A model generated the notes under the pieces. It made no database searches and had not been told where the DNA came from. It saw only the letters and a list, made by a program, of their open reading frames with translations. The translations under genes were made by a program, and so were the position numbers. From Aplysia californica (lineage: Eukaryota), in contig NW_004797618.1 of NCBI RefSeq assembly GCF_000002075.1, forward strand, positions 191,860 through 255,859: DNA of 64,000 nucleotides, written 5' to 3'. This document shows positions 56-58,200 of this stretch, one piece after another (the first letter of the stretch is position 1; every line of letters starts with the position of its first letter).

Positions 56-456
56 CTAGATCTAGATCTAGATCTAGATCTAGATCTAGATCTAGAATCT
101 AGATCTATAACTATAATGGATCAACACCAAATCGGAAACTTGTTCGTTCATTGAAACAGGAGTCCAGAAATATAGAGTAAAGTGTTGTGTTTAGAAATAT
201 TACTTAGATCTAGATCTAGTCTAGATCTAGATCTAGATCTAGATCTAGATCTAGATCTAGATCTAGATCTAGATCTAGTTCTGAAAGTACAAAGGTAGGC
301 TCCCGCATTTTATTAAAGAAGTCACTAAAATTCCAAATTCAAACTCACTGTCAACTCGAAACTCTTGTGACAGTACTCAACACTACACTAACGAAAGTAA
401 AAGAATCCAAAATACGTTAGAACACTTCAACGACGATCTAGATCTAGATCTAGATA
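56..456. repeat. (TAGATC)n self-complementary hexamer arrays at ~56-108, ~205-278 and ~436-456
   Basis: Directly visible tandem TAGATC units with occasional variant units (TAGAATCTA, TAGTCTA). Confidence 0.95.
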
Positions 457-700: not shown

Positions 701-1991
701 ACAAACTATGGTGGAAACGGCTAGTAAAAAAGCCTGATCAGATTCCAGAATGGTAATCAATGAAACAAAAAATCTCATCGCCCCGTAATTGTGTTGTATT
801 TTTTTCTTGTGGTCACAAAGGTTTAAACTCGATTTGTTGAATGTAGATCTATGTGTCATCTTAAGAGGGCGGAAAAATATCTTCGGGGATATAAAATTGC
901 TAGATCTATATTACAACAGAGTTTATTCTGATTCTGTATTAAATTGGCGATTTTTTTTGTAGTCATGAGGAAAGTAGATTTTTAAAGATAAGCCTAATAA
1001 CAAAAAGGTCACTGCATGATTAAGACTGATAGTCTATATAATTTCTATTTTAATCCTTTGCATGATTCCTTGATAAATCGTCTGTGTTATCATCCCCCCC
1101 CCCTNNNNNNNNNNNNNNNNNNNNNNNNNNNNNNNNNNNNNNNNNNNNNNNNNNNNNNNNNNNNNNNNNNNNNNNNNNNNNNNNNNNNNNNNNNNNNNNN
1201 NNNNACACACACACACACACACTCACAGTCACTCTCACAAAACCCCAAAACAACAACAGGAAAAAACAAAATGATAACAAAGCATGGAATATATTTGGTA
1301 CCAATGAATTACATTGTACCTTTGGTTTTTGTAGGCGTATTTACAGCACTTACAACACATCGGGTCATAATTTATAAGAGGGCCTGTATAAGTGTCGAAG
1401 ATTAGTGGTGTTACAAGAAAGTAACAAACACAAAAAGAGTGAGGGGAGAGAAGACGATAGCATGCGTTGGATATGCAAGAAGGAGGGCCTATCTTTGAAC
1501 AAACAAACAAACAAACAAACAAACAAAAAACCAAAAAAACCCACCCCATCTCTTCTGCTTTCTGTTTTTTAAGCTCTCACACATTCCTGTAAAGGGTGAT
1601 ATCAGGTCTGCAAAGTCCCTCATGTTTGATATATTGCTTGCTCGGTCTAAATATTATCGCACAGATGTCAATATTATTTACTTATTTACCTATACTTATC
1701 TATTTATTTATTTAATTATTTATTTATTCATTTTAATGAATGTGGTAGGCCTACATTTTAACAATGTGATTTGGGTGTTGACTCGCAAACTCACCAAACT
1801 ATATAATATATGTATATAAAGGCCTATATAATGAATGGCTGAAAGTGGGTCATAGAAGAAGAAAAAAATAGAATTAGCTCAAAATAATGATTAAGAGTGT
1901 CTATGTCGAGATCTGCTATTGTAAAAAATTGAGTATTGGATAAACAGTTAAAACAGCGATAGGGTTGCTTAACAACATCTAGTGGTAGGCG

Positions 1992-2191
1992 CCGTGCCAG
2001 GGCAGAACAGTCGTATCTGCACTTTTATGACTTTGAGTTACGTCGTGCTGCCATTGGAAATATCCTATTTGTAGTGCAGATACACCCTTATGCCTTTGAC
2101 AGAAGATGCAGAACTGGTATAGGCGTTCATTTAAACGAAAATACAAAAATTAATAATTTTTGCAGATATACGTCGGTCTGCCTTGGCACGG
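1992..2191. mobile_element. ~200-bp MITE-like element with ~30-bp imperfect terminal inverted repeats
   Basis: CCGTGCCAGGGCAGAACAGTCGTATCTGCA (1992-2021) versus TGCAGATATACGTCGGTCTGCCTTGGCACGG (2161-2191); no clear TSD. Confidence 0.6.
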
Positions 2192-2489
2192 ATGAAGTAT
2201 TAATATGGTATATTTAATTGATTTAAATGTCCATATTATAGTTGATTGTTCTAGTTTGAAGTAGTGATTACTTAAAGGATAATTCTACATAGCACAATAC
2301 GAGTTGAGGGGGCGGAAGGCCGTGGTGGGGNNNNNNNNNNNNNNNNNNNNNNNNNNNNNNNNNNNNNNNNNNNNNNNNNNNNNNNNNNNNNNNNNNNNNN
2401 NNNNNNNNNNNNNNNNNNNNNNNNNNNNNNNNNNNNNNNNNNNNNNNNNNNNNNNNNNNNNNNNNNNNNNNNNNNNNNNNNNNNNNNGA

Positions 2490-2531
<42 letters not shown>

Positions 2532-3131
2532 GTAGGCAAGTCATGCCTTATTTGATTTAAAACAGTAGATGTATATTCGCAATGATACGTTCGACTATTT
2601 AAATATTCAAACAGGACCACTATAACAGAGAGATTGAGCCCCCACCACACCCCTCCCCCATCCCCAATCCTTATTCCACTCATGCACCCCTGTTCAGTAT
2701 AAACAGCATTTTCTATGAAAGGCAGAGATATACCCTTCGCTGCAAGGTCCAACTTTGCTATGCTGGCTACAATGTCCCATCAGACAGACAGAGGTATAAT
2801 ATAAGACTTCCCGACACAAGAATCAAATTTATCTCTCACAGTAAAAGCACAAAGGGACCAATATACAGGCCTATACACTGAATAACATTTGAACAAAGTA
2901 GAGATAATAAAAGTAAACATACCAAGACAAAAGTTATAGTTAATATAATTTTGTTTTTATTGGGGTTTTCAGAAGATCAGAATATACAGCATAAAAAAAA
3001 TAAAAATTCAGAAATTTTTTCTCATCATGTAGGTGGCATAAGTCAATAAGAGAAGTAACAACATTACAAAATCATTAGAAAGAGATAACATTAAATATGT
3101 GTCACCACTATTAATAACAGAAAGTAACCAA

Positions 3132-3234
3132 AATGACTAGGAAACTTTTTTCTTTTAACACGAACACTGTATTTTGTTCTGCAATGACTAGGAAACTCTT
3201 TTTTTTTCAACAAGAACACTGTATTTTGTTCTGC
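3132..3234. repeat. ~52-bp tandem duplication (2 copies)
   Basis: AATGACTAGGAAACT...AACACTGTATTTTGTTCTGC repeated at 3132-3182 and 3183-3234. Confidence 0.9.
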
Positions 3235-4529
3235 AATTGGATACTAATAATACAATACAGTCAAAATTGGAAAAAAAAGCAACATTAGAAAACAAATTCC
3301 AAACATAGGAAAAACAAATTTAAAACCATATTCTAAATAATCAAACAATATTATAATATTATATAATGTTGTGTTTTTCATTTATCATTATCTTTTCAAA
3401 GACAGGATCTCATGCCATTTTGTATCAACACAGTCAGAAACTTGAGAAGAATCTCGAGTCATCTTGAGGAGAAGAAGGAGAAAAGAAAAAAAAAGAAAGA
3501 ATCAATATTGGTGAGGTTGAGACAGATCAGAGTGTGACAGGAAGGGAAGAAAACATTACACTTGTAAGAGGGAAAACCAAGATACATATAAATGTAGATT
3601 GTAAAAAAAAAAAAAATACCAAACAAGACTTTGTGATATATGTCATAAATTAGGATACTTTCCGAATGCTTTTTGAGAGAGGAAGAGAGCACCTATGGAG
3701 AGCATTAATGCTGCGCCTTGTGTAAACAGACAAAACATCCAAAGAGTATAAATGAGAAATAAAGAGCAAAAAACATTTATTGTTCAACTGCTCTTACAAA
3801 CAACAACTGGGTTCAAGCCTCTTTTTCCGACAAAACATATTATATCTAAGCGGGTGATAAAACATTAATATCTTCTTTTTTGTGTACCTCTGCTAGATCT
3901 CGGGGGTAGTTTACTGCTGATTTTTCAACCTACAGTGCAACTGATCTTCACATATGTGATTGTTTTTCCAACTTCATAGGGCCCCGTGCTTTCAGGTGGG
4001 GAAGAGAGTGGAGAGGAAAGCAAATGACAGAACAGGACTAGGGAACAGAAAAGGAAGACAATGGAGAACATTTTAGAGAAAAAAGATTCAAAGATTTTTT
4101 TGACGCTGGCAGCTTTCAATACAGGAACTGAGAGGCGAACATCATACCTCTAGACCAAGAGAGCTCCTGAGACATAACATAAAAACTTATAGAACAGTTC
4201 AAACCAAAAACGTCATAATTATTATTCAAAATAACTGTCTTTCCAATTACCTGTTTCACAATAAACCATTTCATATTACATCAACATATTAAAGAAGAGA
4301 CAACAAAAAACCCCACACACTTTCATTAGAAGTGAATTCTGGGATAATATGACAATGAATAAAATATTTTGCGAGGAAGGGCAGTCAACAATACTAAACA
4401 CGATTATTCTTCCCAATACCAACAATTTAAAAATGTAATAGTCTATGGCAAAGGAAAAAAGAGAACAGCAATAAGATGAATGTATATAAGGATGGCACAA
4501 ATCAGAGGCATCTTGGTTAAAGCATATTT

Positions 4530-4971
4530 GTGAAGCATCGTGGTGAAATCAAGCGCTCGTAAAACAAAATAATGAAATCGAAGAAACCGGTATTTTCCTG
4601 CCCATTTGGCAATTTTTATTGAATTTTAGTTTTTTGGCTCAACACTTATGTCCAATCAAAAACATATACTATGAGTGAATTTTGCTGAAAAACGATGAAA
4701 GGCACAAAAAATGTAAATTTGTAGCCTCCAAAGACTCTAATTTAAAGCTTTGGAAGTCATCAAAGTTTGGCGGCCATTTTCTTGCTAAGTTTACTTCTGA
4801 AACCAGGTGACCCCTACCTCCTTCAATCGCAAATGTGTATCTCCACTTCTATTCAAGACAGATGGGTATTTTTTTACCGAAAGATAGACAAATGAACGAA
4901 CTTTAGGATAATACCAATAACTTCACATGCCAAAAAATTGATGAGCGCTTGATTCCACAGCGTCGTGACAC
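4530..4971. mobile_element. Non-autonomous DNA transposon (Sola1-like) immediately downstream of the RBKS stop codon
   Basis: Inverted termini sharing AATCAAGCGCTC / GAGCGCTTGATT; ATTT direct repeats at 4526-4529 and 4972-4975 (an AWWT 4-bp TSD is typical of Sola1). Confidence 0.55.
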
Positions 4972-4981
4972 ATTTATTATG

Positions 4982-18203
<13,222 letters not shown>

Positions 18204-18430
18204 AGTTGTTGAAGATGAGTTCGTTGGAACACACGAAACAGTCAACAAGCAATAACCTTTGACACTTGACACACCCCACGCCTCGGCCTATCTGCGACCT
18301 CTTACACAGGGCAACGAAAGGTCATGAATCAGGTCATAAAGCCAAAGCCCCAATGAAAGAACGTATGTGATACACACCCCCAAACAACAGCTGGGCTGAA
18401 CACACAAACGTGGTATCGAGTACACTCTCA
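18204..18430 (-). promoter_or_regulatory. Probable RBKS 5' UTR/proximal promoter
   Basis: Immediately upstream of the ATG; CpG-richer than flanks; two AGGTCA half-sites at 18319-18324 and 18331-18336. Confidence 0.45.
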
Positions 18431-21400
18431 GCCCCAGTAGCGATACCAATTACTTGCACTTTAAAAAAATACTAGTTTTCTGACGACAAAGCATTGGCCT
18501 ACTTCCACCTTTTTTTAAAATCAACCTTTGATAGGTTTTCTTTCTTTCTTTGTATGTGTATTGGGGAGGGGGCAGTGAACACGTAGGGCCTATGTTTATA
18601 CCTAAAGTGAAAAATGTATGGGCTTTCAGCAAAAATCCAACAAAAACGCAACTGAATTTTAGGTGAAAGCGCAAAACAAGTGAAAATCTTGAATCTAACA
18701 ATTAACTCGTCTAGAGATTTGCGTTGTTCCTTGATTAGCAATATCTCTGTGTTGAGACGCAGACTCAACGACGCAAGTGTAGGACATAATTCGTTTTATT
18801 TGCACATCATTATTATTCGCACAGCACACTCTAAAATTTAAGAGACTTTTCCAAGGCAACGCACGTTACGTAGCTTAAAAATTTTTTTGATCAGTCCTGA
18901 GAATAGTTTTGGAATGAGAAATGTTACCAAAATACATTAAACTTTGTGATTTGAGTGGAACACAAGACTACTATGTATATTTATATATATAGTGAGAGAG
19001 AGAGAGAGAGAAGAAATAGAGAAACAGAGAGAGAGAGGGGGGGGGGAGAAAGAGAGAGAGAGAGAGAGAAACAGAGAGACCGACAGAAAAAGATAAAGAA
19101 AAAAAAAAGAGAGACGGAACTGGGGGAAAGGGGATGAGGGGCAGGGGTGCAGGGCGGCACCAGCTAGATTAAGAACGTGTTATGCTAGTAGACCTACACA
19201 ATGACAGGTTTAAGCAAGAGTTTTTGTTAAAATATGTTTTTGGTGAGTGTTTTACGGCGCTCACAACTGCATAAGGCATAAGGTCAAGAGAGGGGGCGGG
19301 TTACACAAGCATTTTCAGTTTTGGTAGAAATCAAATTTGAATCTTACTCGGGTGGCGACCAAAGTCTATTCTTATCAATTTTAGGACCACCAGGAGATCT
19401 TTAACATGTGCAATTTGTACACGGTAACCTTTGCAACACTATAAGGTCATATAAGTGCCAAAGATTAGATGTGTTACAAGAGAGTAACAAATATATATAT
19501 ATATATATATAAAAGAAGGAGGAGAGATCAGGACGATAGGTGTTTGACAGGAAAGAAGGAGCAAACCACACCAGATGAGCACTCACCAACCACCCGCAGA
19601 ATCAAGGTAATCTCCAAGATTTTTTCGCCCTCAGCCGAGAAGTCTAGGTGTTTGATTTTACCTACCTTAAGATCAGAGGTGGGGCTGAAAGAGAGTAGTA
19701 AGAGCAGGAGCCAAGGAGTGGCAGTAGAAATTAGCTAGCAGAATTTAAAGATTCAGGAGCACTAAGGAGGGGCCAAGGAGGGGGGGGGGGGAGCAAAAAG
19801 TGGAGACCAAAGCAGACGACAGAACATGATTAGAGAGCAGGAAAGGAGGTGAAAGTCAAAGGAGAATTTCTTTTAAAGAAGAAAATGTTCTGTCACTGTC
19901 ACAATTCAAACACCGTACCTACTGAATGAGAGGCGAACATGGTACCTCAAGACCACAAAAGCCCCCAAGCCAGATCTGATAAAGGACAGTTTAATTTATG
20001 ACAGAATAACAATCAAGAGACACTATTGAGCTACAGTTGATAAGGAACCTGGTCATTGTATGCAAGAACAAGGAACTCAAATTATATCACAATTCCCCAT
20101 TCCAGAATACCCTTTCTATTAACCAACTGTTCTGATTCCTGGTAATGAATTAGAGAATAAAAAGATGCGTGGTTCGAGTTCAAGTGCTCTTTTCTGTCTT
20201 CTTTATAAAGAATGATCAGAGTTTAAACGATCCCGGCTAGGTAGCTGGCATGCTCCATATCTACAAAGACTAAGACATAAAGGTTTCTGCCTTTATATAG
20301 CTTCACTTGAGGGTGGGAAATGTCAATATTTTTCAGCAGTTAGCCTAGAAGCCTACAAAGGAGACAACACCTACAACTAAAGAGGTGTTACTCATAGGCC
20401 AAAGCAAAATGAATTAAGAAAAAATAACAACCCAAAAAACACAAAAAACAGCAGTCAGAGACAGGCAGTGGGAAAAACGTTTTAAATAGTTTTCACTAAA
20501 ACAAATTCAAAGAAACCAGAATATAGCAGGCAACAATGTATTGAAACTTTTCTGCTGTTTTCAAAAGCAGTATTATGGATTGCAGTGATCATAATTTCTC
20601 AAAGGAAAGTCTTTTTATGAATATATTCATTGAAAAGCGATAATTACAAGCTCATCTGTAGATATGTTTAAGACAAAGTGACAACAAACAATCAAACAAT
20701 AAAACCAAATTTAAATAACAACAACCACTTTGACCTGTTTCAGAAAAAAACAATCTTACAAGTACATTAGAAGTTAGACCTATACAAAAGTTTGAGCATG
20801 GACAATATTCTGATTTAGCATGTTTTTTTGGCAGTTCAACGACAAGCAATGCTGCCGGAGTAGGCCCTATATTGTTCAAGTTTAGTGCAATGCATTTAGC
20901 TGGTGCTCAAAGGTAACACTGATAAACCTTTCCTCTGTAGGCACATGTGCAAAGAATCTCATGTCACATTTTCATCTTGGCAAAAACATTATAATGATAT
21001 TTAATGCAAGTAATTACCAGCACTTTTAAGAATGAAAGTCTGAAACTACTGTATAACAGCATAACACAATATCAGGGCATCACAGCCTTAATACAAAAAT
21101 TGAAAATACAGCAGTTATAACACTACTGACAGTATCTTAAATACTGGGATCAGCACACACACATACACACACACACAGATATTATACACAAAAAATAAAT
21201 CTCTTCATACACCCCCCTCCCCCCCCATTATACCACCAGGCCTGCTATCTGTTACTGTCAGGTTTTGGGTTTTGCCATGTAAGAAAAAGAATGCCTATAT
21301 GAAATAGTATCTTTACACTGCCATCCGCCAGCTGTCGGAGTTGTACTGTCCTTAAACTAATGCAAATTTGCCATGTTTATACCACCAGCGAATTAGCTGT

Positions 21401-24021
21401 TAGAGGTGCAAACTACACATGGTGGCTGCTTAATAATCTCTTTCCCACACTCACCTCTGTGAGCTCAGCCTATTTCTAGCACTTGTCGTTGATTTGCTCT
21501 TGATTTGAGCTGATTATGAAAATGCTAATACTGGTATTACTTTATGGTTTAGGCAGTAGTCCATTTAAAAAATAAAATTAGAATAACATTATTTAATCGC
21601 ACTGGAGAAACTTCAAGGGAATCCCCAAATATAAGCCTGATGATCAAAACAATGGCAGGCACCTGTGAGGCTTTTCTTGTGAGGACTCACGCTCAAGTCT
21701 GCATGACAGGTCAAGGTGGCTCAAGGACTAACGAGAATCAGGTAAAAAAACCCACCAAAACGTACATGGTACTTCTGAAGGGTCATTGACTCATATAATA
21801 GCCTAGCTTCTGACCGTCGCTTCTTTCAATTGTGATTAACATAAAATTTAGCTGGAGGTGTTCATGTAATAGATTGCTTCATGTCTTTTTTTTCATGCCC
21901 ATGGCAATCGTGCAAACCAGATCTAGATAAAGTATGACTGGCCACAGTTTGTCTCTAGTCTTTACCAGTCTACCACTAGTCAAGGTGGCAATGAGTGCTA
22001 TTCCGTTATTCTGACAGCCCTGCTGTACCGTCAACTGTACGCTCATCCCAAGGCAGGCAGTATAACAAGATTTGACTGTATACAGAAATTATCGCTTTTT
22101 GGATCATGTAGTATATAATACAATGTATAAAGAATAACAAATCATCAGCGCCATTCCATGATTGTTAAGTCGTTTTTCGAAGTTTTGGAGAAAACTAATA
22201 AACAAGAAAGCACCAAAATCAGAACCAAGACTTGGCGGGCATTCGTTAATTCCAATAAAAAACAAGGAAGGAAATTACAAGACAGAATGAATGAAAATGC
22301 TGTAAGTTTGTAAGATGCTCCTAAAGCATTTACTTGAATAAATTTTATGCTTGATCTGGAAACACCAAGAAATTGATTTGGCTGATTGTGGAATATGCAT
22401 TATCTTGATAGCACTGGAATATTATTGCAGGCAACAGGTATGAAAGACAACATATTTATCATTCATTCATTCATTCCCAAAAGGATCATCTTGGTCTACT
22501 CAATATAGTTACCTGCTCAAAGTACAAAAGACAATAATCAATCAAATATCATTTTCCTTGTATCACTCAGGCCATCCAGCACTGCCAAAAAGCAATAAAA
22601 GTATAGACCACTGAGAAAAAAAAGTCAGTTGCTTGGTTGCAGTAGCACAAAGATTGAATTATACATTTAAAAACTCCTTTCAACTCATACCGATAATTTA
22701 TTCAATACCTTGCAAATATTATATTCTTTGAATTTTGGCTAAGGATTCTTGAGCAGTACAATCAAACAACCCTGTGCTGAACAAAAGAAAAAAAACAACA
22801 ACAAAAAACCCACATGCATACACGGAAATTGGGATCAAAGTTTTAAAAGGCATAATAAAACATATAAGTACATGTAAACACCTTTCTAAAAGAGTTCGGG
22901 GAGATTAAATAACATAATAGTAATTTCCTGAGACTGATAAAAAAGTGACAAATAAAATCTGTTTAAAAATTTGAAGAATGGTTTGAGATATTTGAACACG
23001 AGTTATCTTATCTTGTCCTTGACTAAAAATGATTTTCCGCGGTAAATAATAATCAGTCATGGTGTTTCCAAATTTTTCTTCTATCCTATATGAGATACTA
23101 CTAGCTATAGTAACAAGGAGAAAACTCGTCTAGTTCGAACACGTAGCCCAGCATGAAAACTTACAAAAACCATTGTACAGAGCACTGTTGAAGGCAACTG
23201 AAAAAGACAATGATAAAAAACAACAACTGGTCTAGCAACTTTTTTTTTAATGTACTGGTTTGTTAGCAAGAGAACTCCTCGGTGGGGCGACAAACGGAGG
23301 GACAGGGAGAAAAATCTCAACATCTTCTGCGCTGAGTTCCCTCCTACAACATACGTAAAGGGAGGGCAATTATATGGCACATTATGTCATAAACACACAG
23401 ATGAATGAATAAACAACATCTGTGTTGTAACGGGTTGGCTCTTTCCCTTGTAACATAGAAGACCTGAGTTCGATTTCAACATGGAGAACATATTCTATTA
23501 CATACCTTTCTTTTTTTCTGCTGAGTTGTATTCACCCATGTCGGGCAGGACCTGAATGGCAGGGTTGGATCACAACCTCCTTTACAATCTAAATCGTGTC
23601 TATGTGTTACCCCCAAGCTGAGTAACACATTAACTTCTGGTGCCATTTCTTTGCCATAAACTTTCTGAAATAGTTTTGAGCCTAGCATAGAAGTAAAATA
23701 AATCCCTTAAACCTAACAATGTGAAAACCACATTCTAAATTATCTCTTTTTTTATCACCTTGGAGGGTATATTTTTAAAATTATTTTTATTTCAAGTACA
23801 AAAATATTGTGCTTTTGCTTTGTTAACATACAGCAGTTTAAAGAGTTATAATAAAATAATAATAGCAATATAATAATTACATAATAAATGGAATTTATAT
23901 GCTGTGCCTAGTTCCTAGATGGCTTTAAGTGCTATGCAATATAGAATTATCACTAAACATATCTGGACAAATCAAAAGACAGAAAATGCATACTGTAAAG
24001 CCATTTAACGACAGCACACAA

Positions 24022-24081
<60 letters not shown>

Positions 24082-24372
24082 AACATGCAACCCCATGACC
24101 CACATATATTCTTACATACAAATTGAAAAAAAGAAAACAAAAATCCACACACAACAGTAGTGCTTTGTTCTGTTACTACAATTCAACAATTCATTATGAA
24201 CACAAAACAAAACAGTAAAGATATATTAATTTAATGACATTTGCTGTTGATTTTCTCAGAAAACCAAAATGTCCCAAACCTAGAAAATATGTGACAGAAT
24301 CAGATCAAGTGACCTTTAAAAAGTTAATCACACAAGGTTACTTCTTTGATATATATATATATACAGTGATCA

Positions 24373-24427
24373 CAAATAACACTTCAGTGAGTGCAGTATC
24401 CAAATAACACTCAGTGAGTGCAGTATC
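24373..24427. repeat. 27/28-bp tandem duplication abutting the carboxypeptidase stop codon
   Basis: CAAATAACACT(T)CAGTGAGTGCAGTATC occurs twice. Confidence 0.9.
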
Positions 24428-27087
24428 ATAAATTCTTAAGCATGGAAAAGGTTGAACTTAAAGACCTCAGATTCACAACTCTTTTCTTTCTCATCATATA
24501 GCAGATGTGTTTTGCACCCAACACCAGAAAAAGCACGGTAAGCGACAATAAGAAGAGGTACATCAAAGGACTTGTGCTGGCTGACTGATGTGGTACCTGT
24601 GAGGGAAAAACACCCCAAAAATACCTCCAACAAATGAATGAAAATAGACTATCTTTAAAGTTAATATTCACAACAAATAAACTTAAATACTATGTCAAGC
24701 GCTAAAAAGCTGCTAACTATACTATATATATAAGTCAGGTGTCGACAGAGACATGGTTGATGAAGCCTACGAAGTGGCCACACTGAGACAAGACTTTCAA
24801 TTTATGGTATCATTCTATGTCTTTTGCCAAATTTGTTAGATTTAGACAAACAATAACTTAGAAATTTACAAAATAAAAAACATTACTTACAGTTTAATTA
24901 AAGTATTTTAAAAGTAAAAAGACATCACAGACTAACATATTAATTTATCTCAATATGGGATATCTCTCCCTCCCCCTCCCCACCTCCTCCTTATTTTTCC
25001 TCAACCAAACTAACTTACTAATTTATCTCAGAATAGTGACCCCCCCCCCCCCCCCCCCCAGTTATTTGTCCTCAGCCAGGTCTTATATATTATATTATGC
25101 TAAATGATCAAAACCATTTTAAAGAGAATTAATTCATCATAAGAAAATGATATGATCAGATAAATAAAAAATTGATAGTTCAGCCCCGAGCAAATCTAAA
25201 ATCATGACTGTGACGTGTATGTGAGAAAAATGGAAAAATTTCACCACGTACCTCTCGAGTGGACTGTGAATGGAACAAGGCGTCATATCTCATGGGAACA
25301 CGAGGGTATCGGTCTTTCTTCTGTCGAGCCAAAGACTGATTTTTCCAAATGTTCTGAAAATGAAAAGTCAAATCAACTTTTAGGTTTAAGGCCTCAAAAA
25401 AATATGACAATAGGAATACTTTTCAGCCCATATAATTTCTAAGAACTTGTTCTGATAAAGAATATTTTTGCTTATACAATCTAAATCTTGTTTTGTTAAA
25501 ACTACACACACCAGAGTCATTGGTCATATTTTTCATTTAAAACAGAATGCACATCCTTTAATCTTTTTTCTATAAAATGTGAATATTTCTCAAACAGCAA
25601 TAGTGGAAATATATTTCAAAAAGGAATCTTCACCATCCTCTTTTATAATTCTGATCGGCATCTTATTCATACCTTCGACTTTCGCATTTCTCAGAAACTT
25701 TTATCTATGCTTGAAAATGACAATCTCAGAAAAACATTACCTCCAGTTATTTGTACAGAAATACATAAACAGATTTTAAATCCACATTTTGCTTGCAAAG
25801 TTGTATCACAGAAGGTTTTCAAAAACAAAAACTATAGAAGTTTTTGCTTTGGAAAGGAAATTATTCATACAAAACAGGAAAAAACACAACAGCAAAATGT
25901 TTATCAACAGACGAATTACAATTTGCTTTTGACGATGTTGCTTCTTCTTCCATGAGTGTAGAAAAGTCAAGAGCTCAACATAGAGTGGGTGGATCAGTTG
26001 TAATTCCTCCTGAAAAACAAACCATAAACATAGACATTTGATTGACATTTGTTGTCAGTAAACAACATGTTAAAGTATGTACTTATAAAAACTTTATCAA
26101 CAGTGCTGCATACAAACATTCATAAAACCTATGATTTCAGGTAGATTCAAAATGAATAATTTCAATGGAAAAAAAGTATAATCCTTTTATTATCACATAT
26201 AATTTTGCAATTCTACACGAATATATATCAAAAACGTCCAGTAATTTATTTGGTGGTTGAGAGCATTTCTAAAATATTTCATCTCAAAATCTTTTCTTCC
26301 CTCTTCACATGAAAAGCTAATAATCTAAGTAGTCTTGCCTGCACCCCATAATAAAAGAAGTTACATTGCTACCTGTAAAGCTTCACTCTGAGGGTTGAAT
26401 TCATCAAAACAACTTTTTCCTAAATGATGGTTGTGCTGCCACATCTCAACAGCAAATGAAAAAGGTATCTGCCAAATATATATGCAAGAGAGAAAAGTTA
26501 AAATGTTCATGCATGTAAAAATAATTCTTGCGATATTGTGGTAAAAATTCAAATGAGCCTTCATTATAATCAGGCTGAAATGAAAGACAAAATCAAGGCA
26601 ACTCTTAGCAGATCAGAAACAACAAAAGTTTTCAAATGTATTGCCCACATGGACATACTTTTCAGAAAATAATTAATGTTTTTTGAAGAATTTGACAAAC
26701 ACTCTGTTTTCACATTCAGAGGTCAGAAGGAAAGAAAAGCACACAGCAATATATTATTAATTGATATAAAACAGAGAGAGACTCTAAAATATCATAGAAA
26801 GGATGGTCAGGTAATAAGAGTTGTAAAGAACTATCAAGGAAGGCGTATCAATTTTAGGANNNNNNNNNNNNNNNNNNNNNNNNNNNNNNNNNNNNNNNNN
26901 NNNNNNNNNNNNNNNNNNNNNNNNNNNNNNNNNNNNNNNNNNNNNNNNNNNNNNNNNNNNNNNNNNNNNNNNNNNNNNNNNNNNNNNNNNNNNNNNNNNN
27001 NNNNNNNNNNNNNNNNNNNNNNNNNNNNNNNNNNNNNNNNNNNNNNNNNNNNNNNNNNNNNNNNNNNNNNNNNNNNTGTGCATGCGT

Positions 27088-27134
<47 letters not shown>

Positions 27135-55200: not shown

Positions 55201-58200
55201 TGAAAACTATTCTTATTTTTGGATGGGAACAATAATACAGTGTACTTCGTTCTGTAATAGACATTATTTTTTATTATAAGTGATGAATAATTTTATTAAT
55301 CTTTTTTGTTAATCCTCTGACCTCAGGAAATTTTACCATGCTCTAAAGCTACTATATATTAGAGTGATTTCCATAAACTCTTGGTTTTTGTTGTCCAGTC
55401 TGATACAAGTGTCAGTTATGAAAAGGGCAAAAAAAAAGTAAATTTGATGTGACTATATCTATTAGTTAAATGAGTTCTGCTGTATGACACTTTAAATTAC
55501 AGTCGAACTGGCTCTAACAACCACCTGTTCAAACAACCACTACCTACTTTTTCTCCTTGTACAGTCAAACCTCATTGTACCACCCCTTGTTGTAACTGCC
55601 AGCCCCGCTTACCGCCAGGTTTTGCCAGTGTACAAAAAGGAACGCCTCTATATAAACATAGCATTTTTGCCTTCACACTGCCATTCTCATCCGCCAACTG
55701 TCTGAGTTGTATGATTCTTATTTGACTAATGCAAATTCACCTCGCCATACCACCAGTGAACTGACCACCAGATGTACAGACTGCACATGGCACACAACAC
55801 CCACTAGTTCGCTGCTTGACAATCTTTTTCCCGTGAGATAGACATAGAAAAAGGGAGAGAGATGACTTACGGGTCTGAATACATGTGCAGACATAGAAAT
55901 AGTGAGACATGACTCGGCTCTGAATACATGTGCATATATATGTATATCACCCACTAAAAGACAGTTCATAAACACAGATTGCACAGCAGAATCATGTTCC
56001 TTGACGGTGGGCAGTCGGGGCTGTACTACAAAGGAACCGCACTGAATCACCAGCAGTGCTGTTCCGACAACTTCATGCCTGTCCCAAGGGTGGCAGTATA
56101 ACTAAGTTTGACTGTACTGTTCTACATTATAATGACACTTCCAGGACATCCAGCTGTTTGAAAAAAAAACCAACAGTTTTCTCCTTGACAATGGGTGGCC
56201 ATCTTGGACACTTTCAACTGTATTTAGTTAGCACAAAGTCTGCATTGCCAGACTGTTTGATAAGTTTCTAGCACACTTCTTTTGATAAAAGAGTATTGTG
56301 GAATTTCAGGTGAGGGTGTACGGCCAAGGTGAAAATACAGACCAGTGTGAGCATGCTGAGACCTGGATTTGGCAGATTGTGAGTTATTTTTTGTTTTGTT
56401 TGTGTAGTTATGTGATCATAGTATGTGGGTGGGTTTGTGTATGTGTTTGTATCTAAGTGTGTGTGTGTATCTAAGTGAGTGTGTGCATGTGTGTGTATAT
56501 GTGCACATTCCTTCATTTGTGTCTGTATATGGGAGTATGGGTATGTATGTGTATTATTAGGGTAGTATGGGTGTGTATGTATATGGGACTATGGGTGTGT
56601 GTGTGTGTGTGAGTGTGTGTGTGTGTGAGTGTGTGTGAGTGCGTGCATGCAGTGTAAATTTGTGTGTATATGGGAATATGGGTATGTGTATGTGTTTGTG
56701 AATATGTTGTGCATGGATATGTGGAGAGAAAAAAACTACTGTTCTTTTTTTATGCTGTCTGTATTTTTGTGATTTTGTATTGGTTGCTTTTTTTAGTGTG
56801 TGTTCTGGTTGTTAAATTGTGGTCTGCTTTTCCTACCTTTTTAAAGGTTGATGTAGTCGTAGTCCTACCTAATCTGTTATTTATTTATTGTGGATTGTAG
56901 GTGTTATCATAATTAAATGATAGGAACTATTATATTTCTTTATGATGGATTAATTTATTTCTATATCTCTCAATTGTGGTTGATATGGGGTGGGTGGTCT
57001 TGCTGTTAGGCTCTTGGACTCAACAACGGTAAGGTTATGGGTTCGAATCCTGTCCTTGGGAAAGGTACTTTACACAAATTTTCCTCATTTCACCCAGGTT
57101 GGAACGGGTACCTGGCTATAGACAGCGAGAGATTTTGTCAGTTTGTTAGTGTTTGAGCGCGTGCAGTCCTCAACTTGCACTGTATGCTTCCCAAGATGCC
57201 GAGAATGTTTCTGAGTGTTCTAGGGTCTGCTAGGGTATTAATGGTTGTAAAGCACACAGAACATGCTATAGAGAGTAGATGTGCGCTATATAAATGCCAA
57301 AATTATTATTACTATTAATTGATATATTTCCTTTATATGTCAGAACCCTTGATTTTGCTTTGGTCATTCTACTTCTTTTACAGTGTTATTATAGCCTTTA
57401 TCTGTTCCAGTGGGTGGTTGGAGAGTGTTGTGATGTAACAAGATGTTTACTTACAAGACAATATTAATTTTTGCACAGGGTGATTAAAAAAGAGTGAACC
57501 GATTTTATGATGCATTGCTTCAGTTCTCAAACTTTGTTATGATGAAATGAGTCAGTGATCATTTGAAAGAGGAGTTATCTAAATTTTGAATAGCTGAGCC
57601 ACATTGATGAATTGGTCGGAAAGATCCCCAAACCTCCCAGAGTGTGATTTTTTTCTAGTGGGAATATGAACGTTCATGTTCCACCACCACCCACTTATCT
57701 AGATGACCTATAACATCGGATAACAACAGTGGTCAACTCAGTGGGTCATGATATGAGGCAATGCTCCTGGGATGAATTCTCTTTTTGCATTGATATTGCC
57801 CATGTTGCTGGTGGTAGCCCATTGAACACTTGTAAGACAGGAAATAAAAGTTGATTGTGAGTACAATTCTTGGCACTTGGCTTGAGTTTTCTATTGCTTT
57901 TCTGTATTTAAATTATATAGCGTAATGAAATAGGTTCATTCTGTTTTAATCACCCCTTACATGTAGCCTATTTCAAGGACGACAACGGATATGGCTGCTA
58001 TCACCATAGAGCCAGCTTGGTTATGTGAAAACTGAATTAGTCACTTTTAAAGACAAGTGGGCTAACCCAGATTTCGGTTGCTTCCAGAAATCTTGACCTA
58101 CACCAAAAGTGGGCATTGCCCCACCTATAGGAGAAGTTTGTTTTCATTGGTGTGTATATTTGTTTGGTTTTTGCGATAACTCTCCTTGTCTTTTAAAGAA

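Follow-up and report, generated by a model that had tools for sequence, protein, structure and literature searches.

Why should a single eight-letter palindrome, four letters held between two TA dinucleotides, recur throughout a short stretch of the Aplysia californica genome? The window considered here (the whole stretch that was analysed, 64,000 nucleotides) comprises bases 191860-255859 of contig 348 (NW_004797618.1) within the 927.3-Mb assembly of 4332 contigs. It contains the palindrome TAGGCCTA at 12 sites, against an expectation of 0.46 from dinucleotide shuffles (largest value 3) and of 0.4-0.7 under Markov models of orders 0 to 3. The interpretation favoured here, with a probability of roughly 0.55, is that this palindrome and its relatives, in particular TAGATCTA and TACATGTA, are excision scars of TA-inserting cut-and-paste transposons of the Tc1/mariner type.

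Palindromic units at TA in the window and the genome

An earlier reading of the window, made from its letters alone (the sequence-only reading), had reported the 12 TAGGCCTA sites as an excess over base composition; all of these coordinates are exact and their number is far above the shuffle expectation. The positions given for the five-letter forms TAGGCCCTA (20861, 43173) and TAGGGCCTA (18584, 40772) are likewise exact. The list of TACATGTA was accurate for five sites and for the compound at 57958, but incomplete, with additional sites at 29003 and 34965; the window has 8 sites in all, with 1.33 expected from the shuffles (largest value 5). TAGATCTA occurs 40 times, the majority of occurrences being within hexamer arrays, and AGGCCT shows no enrichment when the outer T and A are absent. 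Ten of the 12 TAGGCCTA sites are in non-repetitive contexts that are mutually unrelated; the exceptions are 42166, at the end of a TAGATC array, and 45822, in a TAG-rich array within a pogo-like element. The sites, none of which has an assigned strand, are as follows.

1746..1753: TA-GGCC-TA, isolated, flanks G..C
11879..11886: TA-GGCC-TA, isolated
16641..16648: TA-GGCC-TA, isolated, flanks G..C
27714..27721: TA-GGCC-TA, isolated, flanks G..C
37322..37329: TA-GGCC-TA, isolated; the palindrome reaches 12 letters
40538..40545: TA-GGCC-TA, isolated; identical in the contigs of three samples
41644..41651: TA-GGCC-TA, isolated
42148..42179: chain GATC-GATC-GATC-GGCC-GACC with shared TA separators, holding the TAGGCCTA of 42166
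43212..43219: TA-GGCC-TA, isolated, flanks G..C; fixed in three samples
45816..45834: chain GCCC-GGCC-GGC within the pogo-like element
49356..49363: TA-GGCC-TA, isolated
49544..49551: TA-GGCC-TA, isolated
18584..18592: TA-GGGCC-TA, five-letter unit
20861..20869: TA-GGCCC-TA
40772..40780: TA-GGGCC-TA; fixed in three samples
43173..43181: TA-GGCCC-TA; fixed in three samples
43551..43558: TA-GCCC-TA (TAGCCCTA in the assembly)
57958..57970: compound chain CATG-GCC
13450..13457: TA-CATG-TA; others at 14540, 17779, 22869, 29003, 34965 and 37388
39073..39080: TA-GATC-TA, private to its copy, 15 letters inside a pogo-like terminal repeat
57..107: array of 8 units, GATC seven times and GAATC once
205..277: array of 12 units, GATC eleven times and GTC once
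17734..18035: patch of single TA-GATC-TA, GGC, GATATC-type and GATTC units
41783..41864: patch of TA-GATC-TA and the chain GATC-GATTC-GATC-GAC

The assembly gaps of the window, among them 1105-1204 and 27158-27322, are irrelevant to the finding, since no motif site touches a gap and the closest, at 27714, is 392 bases away from the one at 27158-27322. Contigs of three independent samples, compared over 40500-46499, match the assembly letters at 40538, 40772, 43173 and 43212, and these sites are therefore not assembly artefacts. Run X1 reads G at 43554, giving TAGGCCTA where the assembly has TAGCCCTA at 43551, and this difference is either an allele or a decay step. The differences of X1 from the assembly, at 43531, 43540 and 43554, are all on one contig, which is probably a second haplotype.

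The excess is not confined to the window. In an independent 171 kb readable from contig 1 (L001-L020, 200 kb), TAGGCCTA was observed 25 times with 1.5-2.3 expected, TAGATCTA 92 times with 3-5 expected and TACATGTA 22 times with 2.7-4.8 expected. The k-mer enrichment proposed as a check on the sequence-only reading is thus found in the window and also across the genome, where the counts are as follows.

TAGGCCTA: 52,570
ATGGCCAT, same core and composition as TAGGCCTA: 10,798
TACCGGTA: 8,620
GTAGGCCTAC: 9,822
TACATGTA: 69,449
ATGTACAT, the reverse of TACATGTA: 31,214
TAGATCTA, with non-T before and non-A after: 135,422

Genome-wide, the excess is about 5-fold for GGCC, about 2-fold for CATG (2.2x the reversed control) and about 10-fold for GATC, arrays included. 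The density of TAGGCCTA in the window (190/Mb) is about three times the genome mean (57/Mb).

The window and the readable part of contig 1 together form a sample of ~234 kb, to which the local counts from here on refer. When GGCC is flanked by each of the 16 dinucleotides in turn, the count is 37 for TA (1.7 expected) and at most 5 for each of the 15 others, with 2 observed and 2.5 expected for AT-GGCC-AT. TA-GATC-TA (132 observed, 3.8 expected) and TA-CATG-TA (30 observed, 5.6 expected) behave in the same way, an excess being seen with TA only for all three cores. Apart from the permutations of their arrays and simple repeats of CG and TA, these three octamers are the only ones that stand out among the 256 palindromic octamers. 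The sites are distributed in patches, their counts in 4-kb bins having a variance 3-4 times the mean. The excess among one-letter neighbours of TAGGCCTA implies a mean decay of 11-14%, in agreement with the absence of polymorphism in the three samples.

Three local structures also contain over-represented words. A (TAAGCC)n-like array at L012:4640-4760 contributes part of the TAAGCCTA excess among the one-letter neighbours of TAGGCCTA. At L001:3122-5672 there is a long inverted repeat with arms of ~660 letters that are 92% alike; TAGGCCTA is at an equal position in both arms and was therefore inherited by duplication. The most over-represented non-simple octamers of the window originate from 117-letter repeats, 100% identical, around the palindrome TTCGGACTCGAGTCCGAA at 39256-39465.

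Gains of letters at pre-existing TA sites

The direction of change can be read where copies of one repeat differ at a TA. The window and the contig 1 sample are too poor in paralogs for this purpose, as all-against-all BLAST of 264 kb covered 3 of the 37 TAGGCCTA sites. Whole-genome pattern searches were anchored on an abundant short interspersed element (SINE) of ~185 bp, with a consensus built from nine copies.

44492..44660, plus strand: copy of the ~185-bp SINE; further copies near 16950, 19431, 46900, 62802 and 11124

At least 11,730 copies of the SINE retain one 16-letter stretch intact, containing the site flanked by ACACCTC and ATCTTCG. All 58 TA-N3-5-TA variants at this site were tabulated; the majority are tandem duplications of the adjacent 5-6 letters, and the remainder include TA-GATC-TA five times and TA-GGC-TA once. 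Tandem duplications also prevail at the site CTCTTG/ACACC, where the other recurrent gains are TA-CATG-TA (four times) and TA-CGAG-TA (twice). At the site AAACATC/TCGTCC, for which at most 20 letters of right flank were visible, TA-GGCC-TA occurs three times together with one decayed form, TA-GGGCC-TA once, TA-GGC-TA twice, TA-GATTC-TA seven times and TA-GATC-TA in ~18 copies across different subfamily backgrounds. Clean single events are present at two further TA sites of the SINE. In the pogo-like family, 2 of 100 copies read GTG-TA-GATC-TA-GTG where the consensus is GTGTAGTG, with one TA. A gain in a copy of this family in the window, TAGATCTA at 39073, had been put forward in the sequence-only reading as a paralog comparison, and it is indeed private to its copy, a single TA being found in the others.

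The palindromes arose where a pre-existing TA had gained 5 to 7 letters, the TA itself being duplicated, as the sequence-only reading had proposed and as the tabulations of single TA sites in both families bear out. Recurrent gains of this size that are not duplications are nearly all TA-GATC-TA, TA-GGCC-TA, TA-CATG-TA or shorter and longer variants of these. The units recur, they are specific to TA, and they are gained there together with a second TA.

These data also bear on selection. Regulatory palindromes could be maintained through the binding of dimeric factors, like the TATCGATA promoter element of flies, and the patchiness of the sites would be in keeping with such a role. However, the units arise as precise insertions in SINE and transposon copies, their decay resembles that of neutral sequence, and selection does not explain recurrent identical insertions, so that this explanation is highly improbable.

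A few further events were seen in the same material. TA-CGAG-TA, present twice at one SINE TA site (contigs 22 and 89), may be a fourth scar type, CGAG being also the end of Minos-type elements. Two SINE copies that are not related to each other (contigs 117 and 920) share the compound TA-GGCC-TA-CC-TA, the TA site being different in each. L001:2812-2860 and L001:5740-5775 are copies of a short repeat, one of which reads GTG|ACTG while the other carries TAGGCCT at the bar. In this single case, taken from a short alignment, seven letters were gained and the site lacks a complete TA.

The unit series, its flanks and its chains

Three related series of units are found between TAs, with the following observed and expected numbers.

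GG series, GGCC: 37 observed, 1.7 expected
GG series, GCC: 31 observed, 7.4 expected
GG series, GGC: 25 observed, 7.3 expected
GG series, GGCCC and GGGCC: 3 each observed, about 0.5 expected
GG series, GGCGCC: 0 observed
GA series, GATC: 132 observed, 3.8 expected
GA series, GATTC: 14 observed, 1.2 expected
GA series, GAATC: 9 observed, 1.3 expected
GA series, GATATC: 6 observed, 0.3 expected
GA series, GAT and ATC: no excess
CA series, CATG: 30 observed, 5.6 expected
CA series, CAG and CTG: about 1.4-fold

Units of 3, 4 and 5 letters predominate and units of 6 are rare. Under the favoured interpretation, transposon insertion would duplicate the TA, and excision would cut a few letters inside each end, so that each flank would retain the TA and two or three terminal letters; end joining would then yield TA, a unit and a second TA, the transposon ends being the presumed suppliers of the inserted letters. 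In Tc1/mariner excision, three-letter 3' overhangs are joined by end joining (PMC7827188) and the scars measure 0-4 bp (PMC9976928). From ends of the form GGC...GCC, pairing of the self-complementary last two letters, GC, would produce GGCC, three-letter pairing with a central mismatch would produce GGC or GCC, and unequal trimming would produce the five-letter units GGCCC or GGGCC. From ends of the form GAT...ATC, AT pairing would lead to GATC, and GATTC or GAATC and GATATC could also be formed; no three-letter class would be expected because GAT cannot self-pair. Ends beginning CA would lead to CATG. The spectrum of units agrees with the one predicted from three-letter 3' overhangs for GGC and GAT ends, down to the absence of a GAT/ATC class. 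The sequence-only reading had already suggested Tc1/mariner-type footprints, a description that the series fits, and had predicted ends of two kinds: GGC...GCC agrees with the GG series, whereas the GA series is better matched by GAT...ATC than by the predicted GAC...GTC.

Preferred flanks differ between the units, being G..C for GGCC, (T)C..G(A) for GATC and A..T for CATG, as expected from different transposases. CC upstream or GG downstream is found at 5 of the 37 GGCC sites, the inserted letters being unrelated to the flanks. A flank-templated model, in which xy-TA becomes xy-TA-y'x'-xy-TA, was considered; it fits GATC at TC-TA and CATG at TG-TA and fails for GGCC.

Flank and unit data are also relevant to a TA-specific mutational process independent of transposons, in which, for example, a nuclease or domesticated transposase cuts TA and repair adds a fixed short palindrome, no element ever having been resident. 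The units are perfect four-letter palindromes, the sites are clustered in patches, unit and flank agree at some SINE sites, and for the GG and GA units no source element has been found, all of which would be accommodated by such a process. Nevertheless, GGCC is constant whatever its flanks, which requires a constant donor, and both the length series and the missing GAT class follow the overhang chemistry of transposon ends. No repair pathway is known to add fixed letters. A mutational process of this kind is considered unlikely.

Single units account for 178 of the 213 chains. GG-type units are adjacent to GA-type units 12 times, with about 2 expected, and this fits the preference of the GA type for C-TA and TA-G, contexts that every scar makes. 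If the units are excision scars, each would create two new TA sites in a C-TA or TA-G context favoured by the GA type; these sites could in turn be hit to form chains, and long TAGATC arrays would subsequently lengthen mainly by slippage. TAGATC-type arrays reach 13 units and the long ones probably grow by self-copying. Might the hexamers TAGATC, TAGGCC and TACATG simply be microsatellites that originated by chance, expanded by slippage and decayed to single units? In tandem, each of the three is self-complementary; arrays as long as 13 units exist, and that of the pogo-like family has been inherited, with copies differing by entire units. However, slippage cannot supply the first unit, and single units arise de novo at a plain TA in SINE copies with no prior partial unit. 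Most chains consist of one unit, the intermediates GACC and GGTC are far rarer than GGCC, and point mutation of one array does not explain the 12 GG/GA adjacencies. A microsatellite origin is accordingly judged quite unlikely.

A more specific proposal can be advanced tentatively and should be regarded as doubtful, namely that tens of thousands of fixed palindromic scars, concentrated in patches, were written by an unrecognised and possibly extinct lineage of TA-targeting cut-and-paste elements whose ends, GGC and GAT, are non-canonical, or by a host enzyme descended from such a lineage, and that these scars seeded the arrays of self-complementary hexamers.

Candidate sources and comparison with known systems

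TA-targeting elements are present in the window, and GG or GA ends are not among them. The TA-flanked elements of the sample end in CAGT and consist of the three listed below (29515-30332, 5806-7078 and 55560-56116) with three more in contig 1. Those with CAGTGG ends are possible sources of the CA...TG unit.

29515..30332, no strand assigned: TA-flanked short element with CAGTGG ends; likewise 5806-7078 and 55560-56116
27917..29301, minus strand: mariner-like element with 29-letter terminal inverted repeats beside TA, ends CAAGGG/CTAGGG

The mariner-like element holds a transposase fragment at 28135-28593 on the minus strand (Pfam PF01359). Elsewhere in the window, a 240-codon open frame at 34261-34983 on the minus strand matches zinc carboxypeptidase (Pfam PF00246, E 3e-21) and is possibly a large exon of a host gene.

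Several other candidates were rejected as sources. ISL2EU elements have a two-letter duplication and GG ends, but the duplication is AT (PMC4482050). Some sites lie near GGTATC-rich regions, which are part of another element whose ends are TAGTGATGGGC rather than TA|GG. The TAGGCCAGGGCAAG-ended family was considered as a TA-flanked source, and 8-bp target duplications in every matchable pair assign it to hAT. One of its copies, a non-autonomous element at L006:3930-5848 (contig 1, 253930-255848), has 17-letter inverted ends beginning TAGGCC and contains three TAGGCCTA. Across the genome this family has at least 139 ends, and its 8-bp duplications take the form GTnnnnAC. Deletion between hAT GGCC ends was rejected as the origin of TAGGCCTA, as it predicts flanking 8-bp repeats and none are present beside the window sites. 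The search for inverted-repeat elements that the sequence-only reading had called for covered ~234 kb of readable sequence together with targeted searches; it revealed no TA-flanked element with GG or GA ends, and the lone TAGGCC-ended family was hAT.

Activity of hAT elements in this genome, the TAGGCC-ended family included, raises the possibility that the palindromes are hAT footprints. Some hAT groups prefer a TCTAGA target, and footprints at such an 8-bp target in which both target copies are kept would form repeats centred on CTAG and spaced by 6 to 8 letters; the GA series does have periods of 6, 7 and 8 letters. Isolated events, however, gain exactly 5-7 letters at TA without an 8-bp duplication, and the GGCC sites have neither CTAG nor flanking 8-bp repeats. 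Footprints of this type are therefore a very unlikely explanation.

Several observations weigh against excision scars of the Tc1/mariner type. Even relaxed criteria yielded no inverted-repeat element that is flanked by TA and has GG or GA ends in the ~234 kb, although this sequence contains ~100 presumed scars of the GG and GA types and 5-6 TA|CAGT elements. A GAC...GTC inverted repeat at L018:1308-1637 proved to be no repeat family, with 14 scattered matches of which none is TA-flanked, and two SINE junctions that start TAGG... and do not continue as SINE are unique sequences. Presence/absence polymorphism was absent at 40538, 40772, 43173, 43212 and 43551 in the contigs of the three samples, in which rare alleles may hide; with no polymorphism at these five single-copy sites, the process has not been seen acting. 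The five-letter GG class is only weakly enriched genome-wide, with 8,951 occurrences with a central C or G (~2.1x composition) and 8,842 with a central A or T (~1.3x). This excess is modest and not confined to central C/G, and the series argument is therefore weaker than the local counts suggest. The first paralog comparison of the sequence-only reading, in which a single TA of another copy was set against the chain at 45816-45834 as a case of insertion, is reversed: the TAG-rich array is already present in ~80 of 100 family copies, the copy at 45816-45834 has one TAGGCC unit more than the consensus array, and that at 38757 has been shortened by deletion and is missing 41 neighbouring letters as well. 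Two SINE subfamilies (~38 copies) inherit TAGATCTA that arose by a four-letter gain (TAGA before TCTA), which shows that some copies are inherited and that the plus-six rule is not universal. Finally, at three SINE sites the recurrent unit equals the flank-templated product (GATC at TC-TA, CATG at TG-TA), and a mechanism dependent on the flank is indistinguishable from a strong target preference in some of the GATC and CATG cases.

In the papers that could be searched, the motifs and genome-wide scars led to primers and assay studies and to no description of the phenomenon. Excision scars are normally studied per locus in assays; in this 927-Mb genome they are apparently so frequent that they shape its word statistics. 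If the favoured interpretation is correct, past cut-and-paste activity could be counted from the palindromes whether or not any element copies survive, the origin of palindromic hexamer arrays would have a concrete mechanism, and the predicted element ends, GGC and GAT, would become searchable. If, more specifically, an unrecognised TA-targeting lineage or an enzyme derived from it is responsible, transposon excision would be one of the main sources of short insertions and of new microsatellites in this animal, and one that can be read directly. If no such element exists, the data point to an undescribed TA-specific insertion process.

Among known systems, hexanucleotide microsatellites resemble the TAGATC arrays in varying by whole units, but differ in that the first unit here is a TA-specific insertion and most sites are single units. 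The PIF/Harbinger-ISL2EU-Spy (PHIS) elements often have ends beginning GG and use AT-rich targets; their target duplications are TWA, AT, ANT, CWG or TNA, never TA (PMC4482050, PMC4122938). A scar of the ISL2EU-like type was rejected, AT-GGCC-AT being not enriched locally and, genome-wide, far below the TA form (10,798 against 52,570). For hAT, the likeness is that a local family with TAGGCC ends also supplies half-sites of the motif; the difference is that hAT insertion leaves an 8-bp duplication and scars derived from flanking DNA, whereas the octamers are six-letter gains at TA without 8-bp repeats. The footprints of Tc1/mariner elements (Sleeping Beauty, Tc1, Minos, Passer, ZB) share the duplicated TA on either side, between which they hold 0-4 letters from the inverted ends (here up to 5-6), as palindromic or complementary pairs. 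The ends implied here are GGC and GAT instead of the usual CAG/CAGT type, and no such element was found in the sample. Unlike the Tc1/mariner cases, the presumed scars of this genome number tens of thousands, are among its most over-represented eight-letter words and are chained into arrays.

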